From sequence record ON529852.1: a stretch of DNA of 64,000 nt. One strand, 5' to 3'. Both the position numbers and the translations under genes were made by a program. The notes beneath the pieces were generated by a model that did no database searches, was not told the DNA's origin, and was given only the letters and a program-made list of their open reading frames with translations. Of this stretch, positions 3,176 to 12,483 are shown piece by piece (positions within the stretch are counted from its first letter, which is position 1; each line of letters begins with the position of its first letter).

Positions 3176-4414
3176 GTGAGCACCTTTGCTGTACCGATCC
3201 TCGCGATCGACGACGTCTACGATCACCCCAACGCTGATCGCCTCTCCATCATCCGCATTCGCGGCTACGAAGCCGTCGCCGGCAAGGCCGAGGACGGATC
3301 GCACCGCTTTGTCAAGGGGGAGCGCATCATCTACGTGCCCGAGGGCGCGGTGGTGCCGGCCGCGCACCTGAAGGAGCGCGGCTACTGGAACGAGGCCAAG
3401 GACATCGGCCTGCTGGCGGGAACCAAGGGCAACCGCGTCAAGGCGATCACCCTGCGTGGCGTGCTGAGCCAGGGCCTGGTGTGGAAGACCGAACCCCTCG
3501 TCGGTGCAAAGGTCAAGGATCGCGCGACCGGAGACATCGTCGCCCAGGTGAATCCGGAGAAGCCTGCGCTGGCGGTCGCCACGGCCGAAGACGGCTCGAA
3601 AACGGCGGTGATGGTTGATTTCGGCGACGACGTCGCCGACTTCTTCGGCATCACCAAATACGACCCGCCGATCCCTCCGGGCCTGGACGGCGACGTCTTT
3701 GGCCTGTTCGAGGCGATGTTCAACTACGACATCGAGAACGCCAAGGCCTTCCCGAACCTGTTCACCGAGGACGACGTCGTCACGGTGACGGAGAAGCTGC
3801 ACGGCACCTTCTGCCGGATGACCTACATGCCCGGCATCGAGCCGCGCGACGATTTGTTCGGCGACGGCCGCGTGGCGATCACCTCCAAGGGCCTGGGCGC
3901 CGACGGCCTGGTGTTCAAGAACACCGCCTTCAATCGTCAGAAGAACGTCTACGTGCGCAATATGCTGCCGCTGGTGGACCACTTCGTCTCGGCCTGCAAC
4001 CAGGACGCCAAGGGCCTGACCGTCCACCTGATGGGCGAGGTTTACGGCGCTGGCGTGCAGGACCTCAAGTACGGCCGAACCGAGGACCAGGGCTTCGCCG
4101 CCTTCGACGTCTGGATCGAGAAGTCGGGCTTCCTGGCCGAGGTCGAGAAGGATTACGCCTGCATCGCCTTCGGGGTGGAGCGAGTGCCGGTCTTGTTCGA
4201 GGGCTTCTACGACAAGGCGCTGATCGAGGACTTCGCCAAGGGCGACACCACGATCGACGGCGCCGAGAACATCCGCGAAGGCGTCGTCGTGACCCTGACC
4301 GGAGAGCAGGACAAACGCCCCGACGGCAACGGCCTGGGCGGCACCCTGCGCCCGATCTGCAAGGTCGTGTCGGAAGCCTACCTGACCCGCAAGGGCGGGA
4401 CCGAACTGCAATAG
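3176..4414 (+). CDS. RNA ligase (DRB0094/Rnl2-like family)
   Basis: N-terminal HPNADRL, YVPEGAVVP and RVKAITLRGVLSQG; nucleotidyltransferase motifs TEKLHG, GEVYG, FDV, REGVVV. Confidence 0.85.
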   Translation: MSTFAVPILAIDDVYDHPNADRLSIIRIRGYEAVAGKAEDGSHRFVKGERIIYVPEGAVVPAAHLKERGYWNEAKDIGLLAGTKGNRVKAITLRGVLSQGLVWKTEPLVGAKVKDRATGDIVAQVNPEKPALAVATAEDGSKTAVMVDFGDDVADFFGITKYDPPIPPGLDGDVFGLFEAMFNYDIENAKAFPNLFTEDDVVTVTEKLHGTFCRMTYMPGIEPRDDLFGDGRVAITSKGLGADGLVFKNTAFNRQKNVYVRNMLPLVDHFVSACNQDAKGLTVHLMGEVYGAGVQDLKYGRTEDQGFAAFDVWIEKSGFLAEVEKDYACIAFGVERVPVLFEGFYDKALIEDFAKGDTTIDGAENIREGVVVTLTGEQDKRPDGNGLGGTLRPICKVVSEAYLTRKGGTELQ

Positions 4415-4777: not shown

Positions 4778-6712
4778 GTGGCCCACATCGACTATGAGAA
4801 CAACCTGTTTCTCGGACGCGGCACGTTCGAGGAGCGGGAAATCTTCCGTGATGTCCTGGGCAAGTTCCAGGGCTTCACCTTTTCCAAGGAATACGGCTGC
4901 TGGACGACCGGCGACGTCGTGATGGCCCAGGCGGTCAAGGGCGTGGTCTGGACCGACCGCGCCATGGCGCGTCTGCGCACCCTGCTGGAAGCCGCCAAGA
5001 TCAGCGAAGAACTGTCGTGGCGATCGGATACGACCTATGTGCCGCCGTCGCCGCCGGGGTTGAGTTACCTCCCCTACCAACGCGCCGGAATCGAATACGC
5101 ACTGATGCGCAAGGACACGCTGATCGCCGATCAGCCTGGTCTGGGCAAGACCATCCAGGCGATCGGCGTCTTGAACGCTGACGAGACCATCAACAGCGCC
5201 CTGTTCATCGTGCCGGCCTCGCTGAAGATCAACTGGCATCGCGAGATCGACAAGTGGATGCTGCCCAACCTGACCTTCGGCATCGCCGAGGCCAAGCGGA
5301 TCGACAAGGAGTTGATCGGTTACGCCAAGGCCTATGAATATGTCGAGGACGGGGTCTACAAGACCGGGGCCAAGGCGGGCCAGCCCAAGTTCAAGAAGGT
5401 CGAGGTCCAGGGCAAGCCCAAGTATCGCAACGTCGAGACGTCCGACTACTGGCCCGACACCGACGTCGTCATCATCAACTACGACATCCTGGAGCGCTTC
5501 GCGGTCCAGATCAAGGAACGCAACTGGGACTACCTGGTCTGCGACGAATGCCATGCGCTGAAGAGCGCCGCGACCGGGCGCACCCTGTTCGTGCTCGGCG
5601 GCAAGCAGGAGTTCAACAAGGCCCAGCGCGACAAGCGCAAGGCCGAGGGCCTGTCGTCGCGGCCGATCTGGCATCGCGCCATCGACGCCAACCGCCGCGT
5701 CTTCCTGTCCGGCACGCCGATGATGTCGCGGCCGGTGGAGTTGTGGCCCATCGCTCACGCCTTCAACCCCTCCGACCTGGGCCGCGACTATGTCGACTTC
5801 GCCTACCGCTACTGCGCCGCCTGGACGACCGCCTACGGTCTGGACGTTTCGGGCGCCTCGAACCTGGAGGAGTTGGGCCAGAAGGCCCGCGCCAGCTTCA
5901 TGGTGCGCCGGCTGAAACGCGAGGTGCTACCGGAACTGCCGCCCAAGCGCCGCATCGTCGTCACCCTGGACAGCCCTGAAATCCGCGAACTGGTCGCCCG
6001 TGAAGACGAACTGGCCCAGGCGTTGCGCCTCTACGAGAACGTCACCCTCAACAAGGGCGTGGTGGTCGACGAGATCAACCACGGCATCCAGATCGTCAAC
6101 CACATGACGCGGATGGGGATGACGGACGAGTTCGATCCCGACAATCCGAACTGGCGCTCGCTCGACCTCGACTACGCCGCCTCGGTCGCCGGTCTGGAGC
6201 CGCCGGCCGTCGCCATCCTGTTCGAGGAAATGGCGAAGGTGCGCCGCGATCTCGGCCTCGCCAAGCTGAGCGCGCTCAAGCCGTGGATGGATGATTTCCT
6301 GGAGGGTGGCGAGAAGCTGCTGATGTTCGCCTACCACTCCGACGTGGTCAAGGCGCTGGCCCTGGCGGCCGAGAAGTGGAACCCGGCGGTGATCTGGGGC
6401 GGCACGCCCCTGCACAAGCGCCAAGGCGAGGTCGACAAGCTGCAAGGCGACGAAAGCTGCCGCCTGTTTATCGGCAACATCCAGGCGGCCGGCGTCGGCT
6501 TCACCATGACGCGCGCCCATGACGTCGCCTTCGCCGAGGGCGACTGGGTGCCCAGCCAGATTGAGCAGTGTGAGGACCGCGCCTGCCGCATCGGCCAGAC
6601 GGCCGAGAAGATCAACAGCTACTTCCTGGTCGCCAACGGCTCGCTCGATTCCCGCATCGCCCAGGCCGCCAAGGCCAAGGAAGACAACATCAACCTGGCG
6701 ATGGGGGCGTGA
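4778..6712 (+). CDS. SNF2/HARP-like helicase
   Basis: ADQPGLGKT (Walker A), DECH, LSGTP, GVGFTMTRA, QCEDRACRIGQ. Confidence 0.9.
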   Translation: MAHIDYENNLFLGRGTFEEREIFRDVLGKFQGFTFSKEYGCWTTGDVVMAQAVKGVVWTDRAMARLRTLLEAAKISEELSWRSDTTYVPPSPPGLSYLPYQRAGIEYALMRKDTLIADQPGLGKTIQAIGVLNADETINSALFIVPASLKINWHREIDKWMLPNLTFGIAEAKRIDKELIGYAKAYEYVEDGVYKTGAKAGQPKFKKVEVQGKPKYRNVETSDYWPDTDVVIINYDILERFAVQIKERNWDYLVCDECHALKSAATGRTLFVLGGKQEFNKAQRDKRKAEGLSSRPIWHRAIDANRRVFLSGTPMMSRPVELWPIAHAFNPSDLGRDYVDFAYRYCAAWTTAYGLDVSGASNLEELGQKARASFMVRRLKREVLPELPPKRRIVVTLDSPEIRELVAREDELAQALRLYENVTLNKGVVVDEINHGIQIVNHMTRMGMTDEFDPDNPNWRSLDLDYAASVAGLEPPAVAILFEEMAKVRRDLGLAKLSALKPWMDDFLEGGEKLLMFAYHSDVVKALALAAEKWNPAVIWGGTPLHKRQGEVDKLQGDESCRLFIGNIQAAGVGFTMTRAHDVAFAEGDWVPSQIEQCEDRACRIGQTAEKINSYFLVANGSLDSRIAQAAKAKEDNINLAMGA

Positions 6713-7131
6713 CCTCCCGCACCGCGTGGCAGAAAGAGGTCGACGACCTGTTCTGGGGCGGCGAGCCGTTCGCCGACCGCCAGCGCCGGGTCGAGACTGA
6801 ACGCCGCGAGCGGTGGTCCCAGGAAGTGCGCATCAATCCGTCGGCCGAGGTCTTGGTCGGGCTGTGCCGTAAAGCGCGGTCGCAGGGTCTGCGCGGCATG
6901 TTGCACCAGGGCGACCTCTACTGGTGGCAGGCCTATTACGCCACGCACCACGACGTCCTTCACTGGATGGCGATCCCCGGCAACAAACTGGCGACCGGCG
7001 TGGAGTTGCACGTCTTCGATGACGGGGCCGTCGGCCTGACCGCGTTCGATCCTGCGGCCTTCGAGGCGTGTTTGATCCACCCGAGTCTGATCGGCCGGAT
7101 CGACGCTGAAGGCGTGCTGATCAGCCGCTGA
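6709..7131 (+). CDS. hypothetical protein
   Basis: 140-aa ORF, GTGA overlap with the helicase stop. Confidence 0.7.
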   Translation: MTSRTAWQKEVDDLFWGGEPFADRQRRVETERRERWSQEVRINPSAEVLVGLCRKARSQGLRGMLHQGDLYWWQAYYATHHDVLHWMAIPGNKLATGVELHVFDDGAVGLTAFDPAAFEACLIHPSLIGRIDAEGVLISR

Positions 7132-7212
7132 CAGGCGCCGGCGTTTTCGGCGCCGCAACAAAACTGTGATAGGGGCGTTGGTCAGGCTGTAGTTTTTGCC
7201 TTCAGGACCCCT

Positions 7213-7542
7213 ATGCATACCCGACAACCCGAAGAGTTCGCCCGCATTCTCGACGAGGCGGCCGAGCATATCGCACGCCAACCGATCCATCCCGGTCAAT
7301 CCCTGCCGGGGTTATGGAACCTGGACGACGATTCTCACGAGCCGGCGCGCCTGATCGGCGTCATCGTGGCCTCGGCCCTGGCCCAAGTCTGCAAGACCGG
7401 CGATTGCGACCTGCAAGAGGCGCTCGCCAGCTATGCGGCGGTCTCCCACAACATCCCCCTGGTCGCCAAGGGCGGTCCGGACGTGATCGCGGCGCAGAAC
7501 CTGCGCGACGCCGCCCGGACGCTGCGTGAAGCGCGTCACTGA
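7213..7542 (+). CDS. hypothetical protein
   Basis: 109-aa ORF, AGGA SD-like sequence, followed by a terminator. Confidence 0.7.
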   Translation: MHTRQPEEFARILDEAAEHIARQPIHPGQSLPGLWNLDDDSHEPARLIGVIVASALAQVCKTGDCDLQEALASYAAVSHNIPLVAKGGPDVIAAQNLRDAARTLREARH

Positions 7543-7545
7543 CAC

Positions 7546-7580
7546 AAAAAAGACCCGTCGCTGTCGAGCGCCGGGTCTTT
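7546..7580. terminator. bidirectional rho-independent terminator
   Basis: AAAAAAGACCCG...CGGGTCTTT between convergent units. Confidence 0.7.
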
Positions 7581-7585
7581 GATGT

Positions 7586-7672
7586 TGGAGGTGCGACCTG
7601 GACTCGAACCAGGATGAGGGTAATCCCTACGGCTTATGAGGCCGCTGCCTGTTCCAGCCGCGCCACCGCACC
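7586..7672 (-). tRNA. tRNA with CAT anticodon (Met or Ile2), long variable arm, encoded CCA
   Basis: GGTGCGG/TCGCACC acceptor, GCGGC-CTCATAA-GCCGT anticodon arm, variable hairpin AGGG-ATTA-CCCT, CCTGGTTCGAGTCCAGG T-arm, U73. Confidence 0.8.
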
Positions 7673-7684
7673 AAAAAGAAATCC

Positions 7685-7756
7685 AGGCGTGCTTCCGTTA
7701 CACTAAACCGGCGAGGGTCATGACCCTCGGACGCCGGCTGCGGGATCGAACCGCTC
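7685..7756 (-). ncRNA. circularly permuted tRNA-like module (T-arm, closed acceptor stem, D-arm)
   Basis: GCGGTTCGATCCCGC, then AGCCGGCG...CGCCGGTT, then AGTGTAACGGAAGCAC; closely similar to the tRNA-like domain at 12874-12930. Confidence 0.5.
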
Positions 7757-7903
7757 TACCTGTGTATCCGCTGTCCGCGCCACGCCAGCGTCCGCCGCTA
7801 AGCGGGCGCCTGGAGAGTCGAACTCCGACAACGAAGATTCGGACCAGCCCGTCGGCCGGTCCACGAACGCCGCGACGCCGAGGGAGGCGCCGGGGCGATC
7901 GAA

Positions 7904-7981
7904 TGGGAGCGGGGACACGATTCGAACGTGCGATCTCTTGGTTATGAGCCAAGAATGTTGACCGGGCTACACTACCCCGCG
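7904..7981 (-). tRNA. tRNA-Met(CAT), initiator-like
   Basis: CGCGGGG 5' end with C1:U72 mismatch, CTTGG-CTCATAA-CCAAG anticodon arm, TTCGAAT T-loop, CCA. Confidence 0.85.
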
Positions 7982-7991
7982 ACTCTTAGGC

Positions 7992-8293
7992 GCCAGTTCC
8001 GACGGCAGTGCGCCGGCTGGTACTCAACGGACTCCTCCGCCGACCCTGCGCCAGGAACCATGGCGGACGCAGGATCAAGACGAAGGCGTTGCTTTACACC
8101 CACTTCGGACGCCGGACCCGTCGGGCCGGCGAAACTTTGACCAGGGGTTGTGGGACGAGTAATCCCGCCCTCTGGCCCGGCGGACTACTAGGCCTGCCCT
8201 TGCCTGGGCTCCCCCAGGCGTCCGGCACGACTTTTGGTCAACCAACCTTTACTCACGAAGACGGACGTAGCACCCGGCGTGGATCGGAACTGG
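7992..8293 (-). ncRNA. candidate ~300-nt structured RNA of unknown family
   Basis: 10-bp closing helix CCAGTTCCGA/TCGGAACTGG plus nested helices; lies between tmRNA and tRNA-Met; no credible ORF. Confidence 0.5.
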
Positions 8294-8374
8294 TAGGCCC
8301 CTCTCCTGAACGGGCCGCCGTGCTCTGGCGGTGGTCCGTCGTCATCGCCGCCGGCGTCCGCCTGCGAGAGTAAA

Positions 8375-8711
8375 GTGGGGAACTTTCTGTTCCAAGGCCC
8401 GGCAAGCCGGGGTTCCCCATACCCGTGGACGCCCTTAGGCGGCCAGGAGGACTCGTTCGCCAGCGGCGAAGTTGTCGTTGTGTGCTTCGACAGTTGTCAA
8501 AGTTGGATCGTGAGCGGCCGAAACCGCCATGCAGACCCTAGCACTCGCCATTCAATCCCGTCACCAACGTCAATCGATACTGGTCGGCCCCTCAAACCGC
8601 GCCCGTCTCCCATCATAGGAGGGGGATTGGTGGAGCCGACGGGATTCGCACCCGTGTCTTGTCCGTCTGTTTCGTTCTCTCTGCTTCGGTCCGAAGACCT
8701 CCGCGCGACGA
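8375..8711 (-). ncRNA. ssrA: two-piece (circularly permuted) tmRNA, alphaproteobacterial type
   Basis: Acceptor piece ends ACGGGTGCGAATCCCGTCGGCTCCACCA (CCA end at 8628); 36-nt intervening segment; coding piece starts GGGGCCGA at 8591 (G3.U70 Ala identity); tag ORF 8491-8435 reads VEAHNDNFAAGERVLLAA*. The 8375 end is approximate. Confidence 0.9.
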
Positions 8712-8717
8712 AATGCC

Positions 8718-8758
8718 TGTATACAGAGTCCGTTTCTGAGTGTCAAGCATTCCGTCAA
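8718..8758 (-). promoter_or_regulatory. sigma70-type promoter of the tmRNA gene
   Basis: TTGACA (8746-8741), 17 nt, TATACA (8723-8718); upstream TTGACGG-N5 repeat. Confidence 0.75.
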
Positions 8759-8766
8759 AGATTTCT

Positions 8767-8853
8767 TGGAGGGACGGGTGAGAATCGAACTCACGCCAGG
8801 CTTTCGCCAGGAGGATTTGCAGTCCCCCGCCTTACCACTCGGTCCACCGTCCC
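8767..8853 (-). tRNA. tRNA-Cys(GCA) with long variable arm
   Basis: GGGACGG/CCGTCCC acceptor, CTGCAAA anticodon loop, variable hairpin GGC-GAAA-GCC, GTGAGTTCGATTCTCAC T-arm, U73, CCA. Confidence 0.85.
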
Positions 8854-8862
8854 CTGGTGTCG

Positions 8863-8999
8863 GTCTGGAAAGGGGAACCCGCCCGTGCCCGCCGCAGGTC
8901 CCGTGGTCGGTCCCGGCGGCGTCAGGGTTTCACGGCCCCAGGTCGACCCTCTCCCGTGATAGAGGGCGATACGCTGCGGACGGGCTCGCCTTTCCAGAC
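8863..8999. ncRNA. candidate ~137-nt long-hairpin RNA (6S-like architecture?)
   Basis: 11-bp terminal helix GTCTGGAAAGG/CCTTTCCAGAC, further stems and a central bubble with side hairpin CCCTCT/AGAGGG. Confidence 0.5.
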
Positions 9000-9058
9000 G
9001 AAAAGGACCGCCCTGTTGCACTCCCCGGAGGGATCGTGTGACGGCCCGTGACCCTCGC

Positions 9059-9087
9059 CTTATAGCGGAATCGGCCGGGGCCGGCAA
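9059..9087 (-). promoter_or_regulatory. sigma70-type promoter heading the tRNA/ncRNA cluster
   Basis: TTGCCG, 17 nt, TATAAG on the minus strand. Confidence 0.55.
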
Positions 9088-9232
9088 GGTCGAAAACGCG
9101 CGGATGTCAAAAATCTCGACACTTCGTCAGGATTCTGCCGCTAAAATGTCGATTGAACTTTATGTTAAGACGTGCTAAGGTCTTCATGTAGTCGTCAGCA
9201 ACAGACTGCGTCCTGCCAACGGAGACATACAG

Positions 9233-9970
9233 ATGCTGCACAGTGTTCACGGCACGGTTCCGAAGCTTAAACGATGGTGCGGGCCTTCCGCCATCTCCAT
9301 CATTACCGGCCAGCCCTATCACCACGCTCTGGCGTTGCTTAAGGACGTCAAGGCCGCCAGACGCACCTACCGTGTCACGAAGGCGCCGATCGTCAAAGGC
9401 GCGTCATCGCCTAGCGTGCGTACCGTTCTGAAGAGCCTGGGTTATCTGACGACGCAGCGGGTGACGCCGGCAGGGATCACCGTCGCGGCCTGGCTGGCGG
9501 CGCGGCGCCCCGCCGACCAGTTCACCACCTTCCTGATCGTGGCGGCCAACCACTGGATAGTGGTGCGCGGCGAAGAGGCGTGCTGCGGCATTCTCGGGAC
9601 GCCGACGCCGATCGGTCAGATGAAGTTTCGACGCGGCGTCGTCACGGAATGCTGGGTCGTCACGCCGTCCGCGCAGGGCGTGGCCCCGATCGTGACCGAG
9701 GCGCGCAAGCCGCCCGCGCGGGCGTCGTCCTCCTGGGACCGCAGCGAGGCCCGCGACCGCCGCGCCTTCGTCAAGCTGGCGCGCCAGCACGCCTTCACCT
9801 ACGACATCGTCCGGGATTGCGACACGATCCGCTACATGGAGATCGCGCCCTGCGCCATCTTCCCCAAGGGGCTGGACACCCTGCACCATGACTGGGCGGA
9901 AACCCTGGACCGGGTCCGGCATTGCCTCGATCACCCCGAGGACGCCGCCTCGGGCAGCTACGGCCGCTGA
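9233..9970 (+). CDS. hypothetical protein, N-terminal C39/papain-like Cys-His motif
   Basis: WCGPSAISIITG and NHWIVV segments; followed by a terminator. Confidence 0.6.
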   Translation: MLHSVHGTVPKLKRWCGPSAISIITGQPYHHALALLKDVKAARRTYRVTKAPIVKGASSPSVRTVLKSLGYLTTQRVTPAGITVAAWLAARRPADQFTTFLIVAANHWIVVRGEEACCGILGTPTPIGQMKFRRGVVTECWVVTPSAQGVAPIVTEARKPPARASSSWDRSEARDRRAFVKLARQHAFTYDIVRDCDTIRYMEIAPCAIFPKGLDTLHHDWAETLDRVRHCLDHPEDAASGSYGR

Positions 9971-9977
9971 ACGCAAG

Positions 9978-10010
9978 AGCCCCGACCGAGCGATCGGTCG
10001 GGGCTTTTTC
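9978..10010 (+). terminator. rho-independent terminator (possibly bidirectional)
   Basis: GCCCCGACCGA-GCGA-TCGGTCGGGGC followed by TTTTT. Confidence 0.8.
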
Positions 10011-10035
10011 TCGCGCCATCGTTTGTATCTCGGCC

Positions 10036-10952
10036 GGCGCAGCGTCAGAAGGGTGTGTCGCTAGACCTCCGTCGCGGCGCCAGGGCACTGGGGCTCCCTA
10101 GCACAATCCTCACCTGAACGTGGCTTTCCTCCCCAAGGGGCTGAAGGTGGCGGTGTCCAGGCGACCCTGCGGGGCTCACACGACAAGGCCTCTTCTCAAT
10201 GCCAGGCATAGAAGTAGGCAGAGAGCATAGGTTCTTCCTACCCTCGTCATTGTCGTGGTCCGATTTCCGTCTATCACAGCCTCTGGCTGCCGTCACGCCT
10301 GGTTCCCATTTCTAGGACGGCGTTCCCCTCAGAAGACGGGTCCTGGTGGACCGCGTGCGGCTCTTCAGCGCCTGACGGAACTCGACGACGTGGTAGCCGG
10401 CCGTCTGAACAAGCGTCCCCAAGCGCTCCCAGGGACATGCCGTAGGAGTGTGGCAGGGTCCGCCCCACGCTGTGTCAGGATATACGACAATGAAGAGGAG
10501 GGGTCAATACCGCCTCTGGCGGCCGTCACGCCTAATCGTTCGTCTCGGGCGGCGTTCCCGTCAGGCCTGATTGTCCCCGGCCGAGGTTTGTTCGGGGGAG
10601 CGGTGCGGTCAATCACCCCGACTCACGTTCTCTCGTAACCCGACAGTACGGGCTTAAGCGCGCACGAGCGCTGCAAGGCAGTCACGCGGTGGTCGACTTG
10701 GTGAGGTCATCAAGCCCAGTCGCGCAATCCCACCCTGTATGACGGGATTCACGGCTATCGTCAAGGGGAAACGGGCGCTCTCTCCCGGTCACGCCTCGTC
10801 CTGATGTCTCAGCCGGCGTTCGCTTCAGACAGTGCGGCAGTCTCGGGGCCGTCCCACTCTCCCGCTGTCGTCGGGCCTGTTCCCAGAGGAAGGTCTACCC
10901 CAGGGCAGTCTGCTCCAGAGGCCAGGTCAGGGCGAACCCTGTGTGCTGCGCC
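10036..10952 (-). ncRNA. candidate ~917-nt large structured ncRNA (GOLLD/ROOL-class size and context)
   Basis: Interval between two terminators with no convincing gene; 8-bp end-to-end helix GGCGCAGC/GCTGCGCC; second long-range helix 10889-10897 with 10062-10070; three copies of an internal motif. Confidence 0.65.
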
Positions 10953-11003
10953 TAAGGACCTTCAGCAAGATTGAAGCCTACCAGAACAAACCGAAGCGGG
11001 CAA

Positions 11004-11036
11004 AGAAAAACGGCCCCGATCCGAAGATCGGGGCCG
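11004..11036 (-). terminator. rho-independent terminator of the TROVE gene
   Basis: CGGCCCCGATC-TTCG-GATCGGGGCCG followed by TTTTTCTTT on the minus strand. Confidence 0.8.
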
Positions 11037-11094
11037 CATCGTTCTTTACGCGGCAGCGTAATTCCGCGAACGGATTACGAATACCCGTATTGGA

Positions 11095-12483
11095 TCAGCC
11101 GCCGACGAGGCCGTCGTCGAACTCCATCGCCTCGACCTCACGGATATAGCGCAGGACGCTCTCCGAGAAGCCGTCGATGTGGACCCATCCGTTGCCGTAG
11201 CCGATGCCGTTTTCATAGCTGGCGACGTTGATCATGTAGGCCTTGCCGGCCTTGGGCGCCGGCAGTCGCCCGCCACCCATCCCGCTGCTCAGCGTTCCCG
11301 ACGCCTGTTCGTCGGTGATGACGATCAGGCGGTCGCAGGCGAACTGACGGTTCACCACGTCCACGGCCTGGGCCAGGGCGGTGCCGTTGTGCGGCTGCGA
11401 ACGGATCACCGCATCGACCCCCGCCATGCCCTTGCGGGCCGGGACCTCGACCAGACCGTTGGAGAAGGTCACGACGCGCACGTCGCCCGGCAGGATCGCC
11501 GCCAGCGTCGCCGCCGCATCCATCCGGGTCAGGTCCGACTTTCCGGACAGTTTTTGCCGCATGGAGTAGGAGACGTCGACCATGACCACGGTCGAACCCT
11601 TCAAGGGTTCGGCCTGATCAATCGTCGCCACGAGGGCGTCGTCCAGCGCCCGCTCGAACGAGGGCGCATAACGCGCCGCCGCCGTGAAGCGGAAGGGCAG
11701 GACGCGGTCCGCGCCCTTGCGCGCGCGGATCGCAGCATTGACCAGATCGCGGTCGACGCCGGCCTGCTCCATGTTGCGCAGGTTGCGCAGCAGGGCGAGG
11801 TAGCCCAGTTTGCCGTCGGCCAGCAGACGCGTGAACGTCGCCTTCTTGTCGGCGCCGCCCGACAGGGCGACTTCCCAGGTGTCGGGCGCCGTCAGTTCAT
11901 TGTCGACCAGCTTCTTGTAGAGGACCTCGCGGTCGTCGTTCGCCGGCTTGGCGTGCGCCAGAAACAGAACGTCGCGCAGGCGCACGGACTTGGCCCGGTC
12001 GTACTTGGCGATCTGATAGGCGTCGAAGTTGCCGAAGGCCAGCGACAGCCCCTTCTTCACCTGAGCGGACAGCGGCGCCTTCTTGCCGTCGGCGCGCACC
12101 GGGTTGAGCGCCCAGTAGAGAGCCAGGAACTCGCTCAGTTCATCGGCGCGCTGGATGACGCGGGCGATGGTCAGCGACACCAGGGCCGAGCCGGACCCGC
12201 GTTGGGCCAGAACGACGAGCAGCAGAAGGGGGACGTGACGCAGCTTGGCGTCCTCACGCGCTTCAATCGCGATCTGGGCGAGGGTCTCGACCGGAACTTC
12301 CTTGGCGAGGCTCTGGATACGGTCGGCGATCGACACGCCGCTCTCGTAGAAATTGTCTTCCCACAGCAGGCAGGACATGACCGACCGGCGCAGGGCCTGG
12401 GTCTTGGTCATCCGATCGGCCGGTGCGCCTTCATGGGTGCGCGCGGTGGTCGTCTTGGGCTTTGCGTTGATCGACGCCATAAT
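11095..12483 (-). CDS. rsr: Ro60/TROVE-domain RNA-binding protein with C-terminal vWA domain
   Basis: Start probably ATG 12483 (MASINAKP, GGAGG SD). THEGAPA, LRRSVMSCLLWEDNFYE, KYDR, TWE, YLALLRNLRN, RVLPFRF; vWA MIDAS DVSYSM...T...VITDEQ. Confidence 0.92.
   Translation of the reverse strand: MMASINAKPKTTTARTHEGAPADRMTKTQALRRSVMSCLLWEDNFYESGVSIADRIQSLAKEVPVETLAQIAIEAREDAKLRHVPLLLLVVLAQRGSGSALVSLTIARVIQRADELSEFLALYWALNPVRADGKKAPLSAQVKKGLSLAFGNFDAYQIAKYDRAKSVRLRDVLFLAHAKPANDDREVLYKKLVDNELTAPDTWEVALSGGADKKATFTRLLADGKLGYLALLRNLRNMEQAGVDRDLVNAAIRARKGADRVLPFRFTAAARYAPSFERALDDALVATIDQAEPLKGSTVVMVDVSYSMRQKLSGKSDLTRMDAAATLAAILPGDVRVVTFSNGLVEVPARKGMAGVDAVIRSQPHNGTALAQAVDVVNRQFACDRLIVITDEQASGTLSSGMGGGRLPAPKAGKAYMINVASYENGIGYGNGWVHIDGFSESVLRYIREVEAMEFDDGLVGG

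Follow-up and report, generated by a model that had tools for sequence, protein, structure and literature searches.

A circularly permuted tmRNA gene of alphaproteobacterial type in the giant Brevundimonas phage Kabachok and its relatives

A permuted tmRNA gene in a conserved tRNA slot

The window that we analyzed is a stretch of 64,000 nucleotides from record ON529852.1, and its positions 8375-8758 are 100% identical to positions 194375-194758 of that record, the genome of Brevundimonas phage vB_BpoS-Kabachok, a siphovirus (Dolichocephalovirinae) with a genome of 356 kb and B. pondensis LVF1 as its host. Positions 8746-8374, on the minus strand, hold a complete circularly permuted tmRNA gene, and the GenBank record has no feature under this match. 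The gene follows an annotated tRNA-Cys and precedes two annotated tRNA-Met genes, beside which an SNF2-type helicase is annotated. The island around it holds about 24 tRNAs, the number given for the Kabachok genome (PMC10070969), together with an RNA ligase and a Ro60 protein with Y-like RNAs; an Rfam scan of 5500-11500 at E-value level returned only the tmRNA and three tRNAs. The neighboring genes are the following:

2361-2831: T4 gp30.3-like protein (PF08010)
3176-4414: RNA ligase (PF09414 with a PHA02142 OB domain)
7672-7586, minus strand: tRNA-Met, annotated neighbor of the tmRNA
7981-7904, minus strand: tRNA-Met, annotated neighbor of the tmRNA
8853-8767, minus strand: tRNA-Cys, annotated neighbor just upstream of the tmRNA
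11095-12480: TROVE/Ro60 protein with a vWA domain (labelled in GenBank as hypothetical, ‘gp540’)

The order tRNA-Cys, tmRNA, tRNA-Met, tRNA-Met, helicase is shared by seven Brevundimonas phages and by phiCbK, Rogue, Colossus and Bajun, with six giant Brevundimonas phages besides Kabachok carrying a tmRNA gene in the same tRNA-Cys/tRNA-Met slot. The Kabachok tmRNA thus lies where its orthologue group does, next to the two tRNA-Met genes and the SNF2-type helicase. With the phiCbK and Colossus genes as queries, blastn matched about 40 more records of the Dolichocephalovirinae, almost none of which has a feature annotated at that place; the gene is present in about 45 records of this subfamily.

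Several observations concern the neighboring RNAs themselves. The 87-nt tRNA-Cys (8767-8853, minus strand, anticodon GCA) has an extra arm of 13 nt, as in class II tRNAs, as well as U73 and an encoded CCA, and a long-arm counterpart adjoins the tmRNA in phiCbK, Rogue and Colossus too. The CAU-anticodon tRNA at 7586-7672 (minus strand) is likewise 87 nt long with a long extra arm (85-89 nt in sister phages), and weak, sub-threshold matches to Y-RNA-like (YrlA) sequences lie at or beside its counterparts in phiCbK and Colossus. The stretch 7680-7900 (minus strand), which separates the two tRNA-Met genes, folds strongly and includes two T-arm-like hairpins (7826-7812 and 7754-7740); it drew no call from ARAGORN or Rfam and may be a degenerate or unusual tRNA-like RNA. 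A GOLLD RNA (RF02032), annotated in neither record, adjoins the tmRNA in phiCbK (L130:506-992, 165.3 bits against a cut-off of 150, with a tRNA-Gly inside) and in Bajun (L138:295-713, 104 bits), and searches of Kabachok, Gurke and Colossus for this RNA found none.

Organization of the gene

An initial annotation made from the sequence had described a permuted gene in which a CCA-ended acceptor piece is followed by a 36-nt spacer and a coding piece starting GGGGCCGA, with a G3.U70 pair, and all of these elements are found on the minus strand where it had placed them. The GGGGCCGA start lies at 8591, and G3 (8589) pairs with U (8634) to form G3.U70. In the order of transcription, the parts are:

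8741..8746, minus strand: −35-like hexamer TTGACA, recognized by sequence, with a putative promoter function
8718..8723, minus strand: −10-like hexamer TATACA, recognized by sequence, 17 nt after the −35
8628..8714, minus strand: acceptor piece, from the RF04321 alignment and pair counts, with a putative 5′ end set by the promoter
8699-8688, minus strand: 5′ hairpin of the acceptor piece
8655-8639, minus strand: T arm
8638-8632, minus strand: 3′ acceptor strand CGGCUCC
8631, minus strand: discriminator A73
8630-8628, minus strand: encoded CCA, with its terminal A at 8628
8592..8627, minus strand: intervening spacer of 36 nt, presumed removed
8374..8591, minus strand: coding piece of about 218 nt, with its 3′ end placed by homology to the host ...AACAGAA...CCACU end
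8591-8585, minus strand: 5′ acceptor strand GGGGCCG, pairing with 8638-8632
8435..8491, minus strand: tag frame, with probable resume codon GUC at 8491-8489, 18 codons and UAA at 8437-8435, translated by eye
8430..8441, minus strand: small hairpin CGCC-UAAG-GGCG with the stop codon in its loop (helix-5-like), found by inspection only
8246..8375, minus strand: conserved long stem domain, in which 8375-8358 pairs with 8263-8247, abutting the 3′ end of the coding piece

A hairpin with the stop codon in its loop, built of other stem letters, also occurs in hosts, phiCbK and Colossus. The putative promoter, another element of the initial annotation, holds up as a promoter-like sequence conserved in ten phage lineages: TTGAC is kept at equal distance in seven of seven Brevundimonas phages and in phiCbK, Rogue and Colossus, and the −10-like hexamer, which reads GCTATACA in Gurke and Kikimora, lines up with a box, CCUAUAUU, that is conserved in the ssrA genes of hosts. 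A promoter and terminator consensus scan listed no promoter here and no terminator directly after the tmRNA gene; the promoter went unlisted because the scanner demands T at the last −10 position (T6 rule).

Conservation extends beyond the coding piece: when the Kabachok and Gurke groups are compared, the approximately 240 nt directly 3′ of it (8135-8375) equal the tmRNA in their degree of conservation, and this block has no match in Rfam. The stem domain at 8246-8375 shows compensatory changes by RNAalifold on seven and on eight phages, Caulobacter phages included; in phiCbK, Rogue and Colossus, such changes preserve the base of the stem, CGCAGGCGG/CCGUCUUCG. The domain could be a 3′ processing element or a separate RNA, and its inclusion in the tmRNA gene is uncertain.

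Family identity

Against RF04321 (tmRNA_permuted), the gene scores 57.1 bits, above the gathering score of 47, with E = 1.8e-08 for the whole 64-kb window and 4227 families. The match runs from 8690 to 8435 on the minus strand, covers the full model (1-213) and is the sole one in the 356-kb phage record. It has the permuted order, in which the 3′ half of the tRNA-like domain, with the encoded CCA, precedes both the 5′ half and the tag frame, and it has the AlaRS identity elements G3.U70 and A73 as well as a T arm; an A (8495) stands at −4 of the probable resume codon GUC 8491, and the frame ends LLAA-UAA. Searching 41 Brevundimonas genomes with the same model, we found a tmRNA in 39, of which 38 scored 115-131 bits, and the phiCbK, Rogue and Colossus genes scored 71-88 bits. 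On RF01849, the phage gene reaches 46.8 bits against a gathering score of 50 and aligns only to model positions 73-180 of 355, the portion that corresponds to the tRNA-like domain; a Brevundimonas host gene scores 229.9 bits over 1-355. Judged by these alignments, three parts of the Kabachok tmRNA are alpha-derived, namely the tRNA-like domain, the 5′ hairpin and the 3′ end, and the rest has diverged. The phage sequence does not pair where the Rfam model places its outer inter-piece helices (NC marks). Free-energy folding, applied to both pieces and to the precursor, failed to predict the T arm and yielded nothing usable for the inter-piece helices or for pseudoknot 1.

The check put forward in the initial annotation, an ARAGORN and Rfam search, was thus borne out by RF04321 but not by RF01849, nor by ARAGORN, which called three tRNAs in the window and no tmRNA. 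ARAGORN calls the tmRNA in phiCbK, Bajun and Caulobacter, and it also misses the genes of Rogue, Colossus, Bambus and Gurke and one Brevundimonas host gene, so its silence on Kabachok means little. The chromosomal ssrA at 1411-1778 of one Brevundimonas genome (L105) scores 230 bits on RF01849 and has no ARAGORN call. Pipelines that use ARAGORN only may therefore under-call two-piece tmRNAs in Brevundimonas and its phages.

Conservation and covariation of the mature pieces

We aligned 15 phage and host sequences and counted the 18 pairs of the tRNA-like domain (7 + 5 + 6) in the 14 distinct sequences among them. All 18 pairs are standard in 100% of cells. Six show compensatory change on both sides, and the U:G pair (G3.U70) is invariant. 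None of 500 shuffles reached the observed paired share or the covariation score, and in slid controls, with the partner shifted by 1-3 columns, pairing fell to 36-48%. The 5′ hairpin adds a double compensatory change among the phages (GGUC/GACC vs GGAC/GUCC). Together with the RF04321 score, the covariation of the tRNA-like domain supports the claim of the initial annotation that the phage bears a complete permuted tmRNA of the alphaproteobacterial type.

Conservation between Kabachok and Gurke differs by part, as follows:

Acceptor piece: 93% identity
Coding piece before the tag: 95% identity
Tag frame: 95% identity
Coding piece after the tag: 98% identity
Spacer: 44% identity, with 126 nt in Gurke vs 36 in Kabachok (90-nt difference)
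Letters between the promoter hexamers: 66% identity

Across the seven phages, the acceptor piece is 93-100% identical and the coding piece 94-99%, whereas the spacer is not conserved, as expected if the mature RNA consists of the two flanks and the spacer is lost. Spacers are 126 nt long in Gurke and Kikimora, 81-118 nt in Colossus, phiCbK, Rogue and Bajun, and 27-36 nt in hosts.

As a separate observation, the spacers of Gurke, Kikimora and Bajun (L007:1632-1757, L008:1632-1757 and L138:1310-1427) fold into a conserved four-way junction of 118-126 nt, in which the junction letters are kept, the hairpins vary and the closing stem has three compensatory pairs; Rfam has no match for it.

For phages, ssrA is a frequent integration site, and they often carry fragments of the gene (PMC9004378); the tRNA-like domain of the Kabachok gene is host-like, so one could read the locus as a decaying relic, or attachment-site remnant, of host ssrA that came from an integrating ancestor and no longer functions. 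We regard this as extremely improbable: nothing is missing from either piece, from the promoter or from the tag frame, conservation is 93-98% in the mature parts and not shared by the spacer, helices are kept by compensatory changes, and the gene stays at one site throughout a phage subfamily. The completeness of the gene and the covariation lead us to reject both the attachment-site remnant and a chance tRNA-like resemblance. On these comparisons, the Kabachok tmRNA gene is a real, selected RNA.

The tag and its resume codon

Read from GUC 8491 to 8438, the tag is VEAHNDNFAAGERVLLAA, 18 residues long and followed by UAA at 8437-8435. Host tags have 13 residues, the commonest being ANDNFAGEVALAA in Brevundimonas and ANDNFAEEFAVAA in Caulobacter, and a scan for the Caulobacter tag found Caulobacter loci and one Brevundimonas locus. 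The initial annotation had used the Caulobacter tag for comparison and placed about five additional residues at the N-terminus; the proper comparator is the Brevundimonas tag ANDNFAGEVALAA, against which the difference of five residues stands but is divided into three N-terminal and two internal residues. The NDNF core and the LAA-type end are retained. In Domovoi, Papperlapapp, Gurke and Kikimora the tag starts VEAS..., codons 3-4 being the ones that vary among the phages (GCA CAC vs GCU UCC) and the rest being invariant, and in every lineage the phage tag has an NDN core and ends AA-stop.

Three in-frame codons of Kabachok are candidates for resumption: GUC 8491, GAA 8488 and GCA 8485. The base at −4 separates them. 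All 32 host sequences have UA-N-N-U before the resume codon, which puts U at −5 and A at −4, and in E. coli the equivalent of the −4 A, A86, is the main frame determinant, with pyrimidines at this position abolishing activity (PMC2481249). Among the three candidates only GUC has A at −4, and this holds in all phage lineages: phiCbK has UAAAU before GUC, and the −4 A also precedes GUC in Rogue, Bajun and Colossus. The AACU before the Kabachok GUC has the same bases as in most Brevundimonas hosts, although −5 is C vs U in the host. In CcrColossus, GUC stands directly before AAC GAC AAC, at the position of the GCN codon of the hosts. ARAGORN, where it calls the orthologues, starts the tag at the equivalent GUC, giving VAANDNDVVAFASAREAIAA in phiCbK and VAANDNAPFAVREAIAA in Bajun.

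Resumption at a later codon of the same gene, either GCA 8485, which would give the 16-residue AHNDNFAAGERVLLAA, or GAA 8488, which would apply if GUC were the −1 triplet as in E. coli, is a possibility to which we give clearly less credence. In the Rfam alignment, GCA 8485 falls on the GCA with which the consensus resumes, Ala is the first residue of nearly all alphaproteobacterial tags, which makes a Val resume codon unusual, GUC directly precedes the resume codon in E. coli (PMC2481249), and the GCA to GCU difference among the phages is synonymous. However, a later start would put C (for GCA) or U (for GAA) at −4, which are the pyrimidines that abolish activity at A86, in Colossus no Ala codon separates GUC from AAC GAC AAC, and ARAGORN picks GUC in two orthologues. 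On balance, and by these alignments, we take GUC 8491 to be the probable resume codon, as the initial annotation had read it.

A proposed route to ribosome rescue

From the identity, structure, conservation, synteny and tag frame of the gene, we infer how it would be transcribed, processed and charged, where translation would resume and how the phage might benefit. The Kabachok locus is probably a functional, phage-carried ssrA gene of the circularly permuted alphaproteobacterial type. Transcription would start at a sigma-70-like promoter of the gene itself or read through from the upstream tRNA-Cys, both being equally possible, and the precursor would fold by pairing 8591-8585 with 8638-8632. 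Host tRNA-processing enzymes would excise the 36-nt spacer, with a cut by RNase P at the 5′ G (8591) and trimming of the 3′ side back to the CCA at 8628, to leave an acceptor piece of about 86 nt paired to a coding piece of about 218 nt. Host AlaRS would charge this product via G3.U70 and A73, and host SmpB and EF-Tu would bring it to ribosomes stalled on broken mRNAs, where translation would resume at GUC 8491 and append (A)VEAHNDNFAAGERVLLAA. The tagged peptides would end ...NDNFAAGERVLLAA, and the LAA-type tag end would direct the product to host ClpXP. A search for SmpB (PF01668) across the whole phage record gave no match, so that SmpB, AlaRS, EF-Tu and the processing enzymes would all have to be those of the host. 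The likely benefit would be an extra ribosome-rescue capacity, independent of that of the host, while infection breaks many mRNAs. The RNA genes and RNA-maintenance proteins around the tmRNA may be read in the same way, as a phage toolkit that sustains translation in the infected cell, and the fact that one genomic slot is kept through large sequence divergence argues that the RNA is useful to the phage.

RNA-labelled public virome and wastewater runs contain the locus as contigs only. One contig of 395 nt (8302-8696) crosses the spacer, and coverage also includes flanks that code for protein; because of both features, these contigs may be DNA.

ClpX recognizes C-terminal residues of ssrA tags. 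Since the Kabachok tag keeps the NDNF core and the LAA-type end, normal degradation is predicted, and for the same reason the suggestion that the longer tag alters SspB use or evades host nucleases stays a speculation.

Phage tmRNAs have also been given anti-host roles. A phage tmRNA reduced to the tRNA-like domain was reported as a tmRNA inhibitor (PMC4131195), and the authors who described Lacusarx proposed a counter-role for the tmRNA of that phage (PMC5648845). The Kabachok RNA might act mainly against the host system, competing with host tmRNA for SmpB or adding a tag that host adaptors handle differently, which would alter what becomes of tagged proteins in the infected cell. Its three extra N-terminal and two extra internal tag residues beside the NDNF core would fit such a role, as would its distance from the host outside the tRNA-like domain (57 vs 115-131 bits on RF04321). 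Nevertheless, the gene is complete, its frame is intact with a ClpX-type AA end, and the NDN core is kept in every lineage, and we see an anti-host role as a slim prospect.

It is also rather improbable, in our estimate, that the Dolichocephalovirinae tmRNAs form a phage-specific, re-engineered lineage rather than a mere copy, with phage-controlled processing or a different fate for tagged proteins. The changes that may bear on this are the Val (GUC) resume codon and tags that are 2-7 residues longer than those of the host, and further candidates may be the conserved 120-nt four-way-junction spacer of some members and the structured domain fused 3′. Were the lineage re-engineered, the consequences could include, for example, an altered SspB hand-off or resistance to the cell-cycle-timed tmRNA turnover of the host. 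Extra rescue capacity from a functional ssrA gene remains our preferred account.

Relation to earlier work

In the paper that describes Kabachok, ARAGORN was run for tRNAs and tmRNAs, and of the latter “none could be detected” (PMC10070969). Contrary to that statement, the record of Brevundimonas phage Bajun from the same laboratory (ON529858.1) has a tmRNA feature at the orthologous site, 192406-192838. Gill et al. 2012 listed no RNA besides tRNAs in phiCbK-like phages (PMC3556154). A survey from 2022 found tmRNA in 402 of 18,146 phage genomes, with 133 unique structures of which 53 are two-piece, and the “Permuted” part of its supplementary file 2 lists the Caulobacter phages CcrSC, CcrBL9, CcrPW, Karma, Magneto and phiCbK and no Brevundimonas phage (PMC9004378). 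The supplements of the 2025 tmRNA database paper contain no phage names (PMC11915505). The novelty implied by the initial annotation was therefore overstated, the gene being annotated in Bajun and catalogued for Caulobacter phages: the Kabachok gene is a missed annotation in an already catalogued phage tmRNA lineage and not a new kind of element.

Knowledge of phage tmRNAs is unchanged in kind. What is added is a correction of the record: the gene occurs in seven giant Brevundimonas phages and, over the whole subfamily, in about 45 genomes, most of which go uncalled when annotation is based on ARAGORN. A second host genus, Brevundimonas, is also added for this phage tmRNA lineage. The tags, spacers and 3′ domains compared here offer ready variants with which to address the choice of resume codon and the role of the tag N-terminus, and both Brevundimonas and Caulobacter are tractable hosts for such tests.

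Comparison with known tmRNAs

The closest known relatives are the genes of the phiCbK-like Caulobacter phages and Bajun, which occupy the same slot (tRNA-Cys or GOLLD, tmRNA, tRNA-Met, tRNA-Met, helicase) in the same permuted order and share the −4 A before GUC, the NDN core, the AA tag end and the 3′ CGCAGGCGG/CCGUCUUCG stem. Their DNA similarity to Kabachok is too low for blastn to join them. The acceptor stem reads GGGGCCG in Kabachok vs GGGGGCG in phiCbK-like phages and Bajun, the spacer is 36 nt vs 81-118 nt, and the tag is VEAH-NDNF...LLAA vs VAANDN...AIAA or VNDND...LLAA; on RF04321, Kabachok scores 57 bits, whereas the phiCbK-like genes score 71-88.

With the host two-piece tmRNA of the Caulobacteraceae (RF01849; Keiler et al. 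2000, as cited in PMC9004378), the Kabachok gene has in common the permuted order, the 5′ hairpin, nearly identical T-loop and acceptor-stem letters, a spacer of about 30 nt, the NDNF core, the stop codon in a hairpin loop, the ...AACAGAA...CCACU end and the position of the −10 box. It differs in matching RF01849 through the tRNA-like domain only (46.8 bits vs 230 bits for the full-length host RNA), in having 100 nt vs 81 before the resume codon and a shorter stretch after the stop, and in a tag of 18 vs 13 residues that starts with Val vs Ala. The host coding piece is 214 nt long by ARAGORN.

The two-piece tmRNAs of marine phages (OM43 phage Melnitz, pelagiphages and cyanophages) are also phage-borne permuted ssrA genes that work with host SmpB, and were proposed to keep the hijacked translation machinery running (PMC9004378). 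The Melnitz gene, which belongs to another phage lineage and host, lies behind a glutamine riboswitch, whereas we found no riboswitch or other Rfam element beside the Kabachok gene. The tmRNAs of mycobacteriophages (Bxz1 group) and Bacillus phage G are phage-encoded too, but are one-piece RNAs of the standard, unpermuted form, and DS6A carries a form with the tRNA-like domain only and no tag frame (PMC4131195), whereas the frame of Kabachok is complete.
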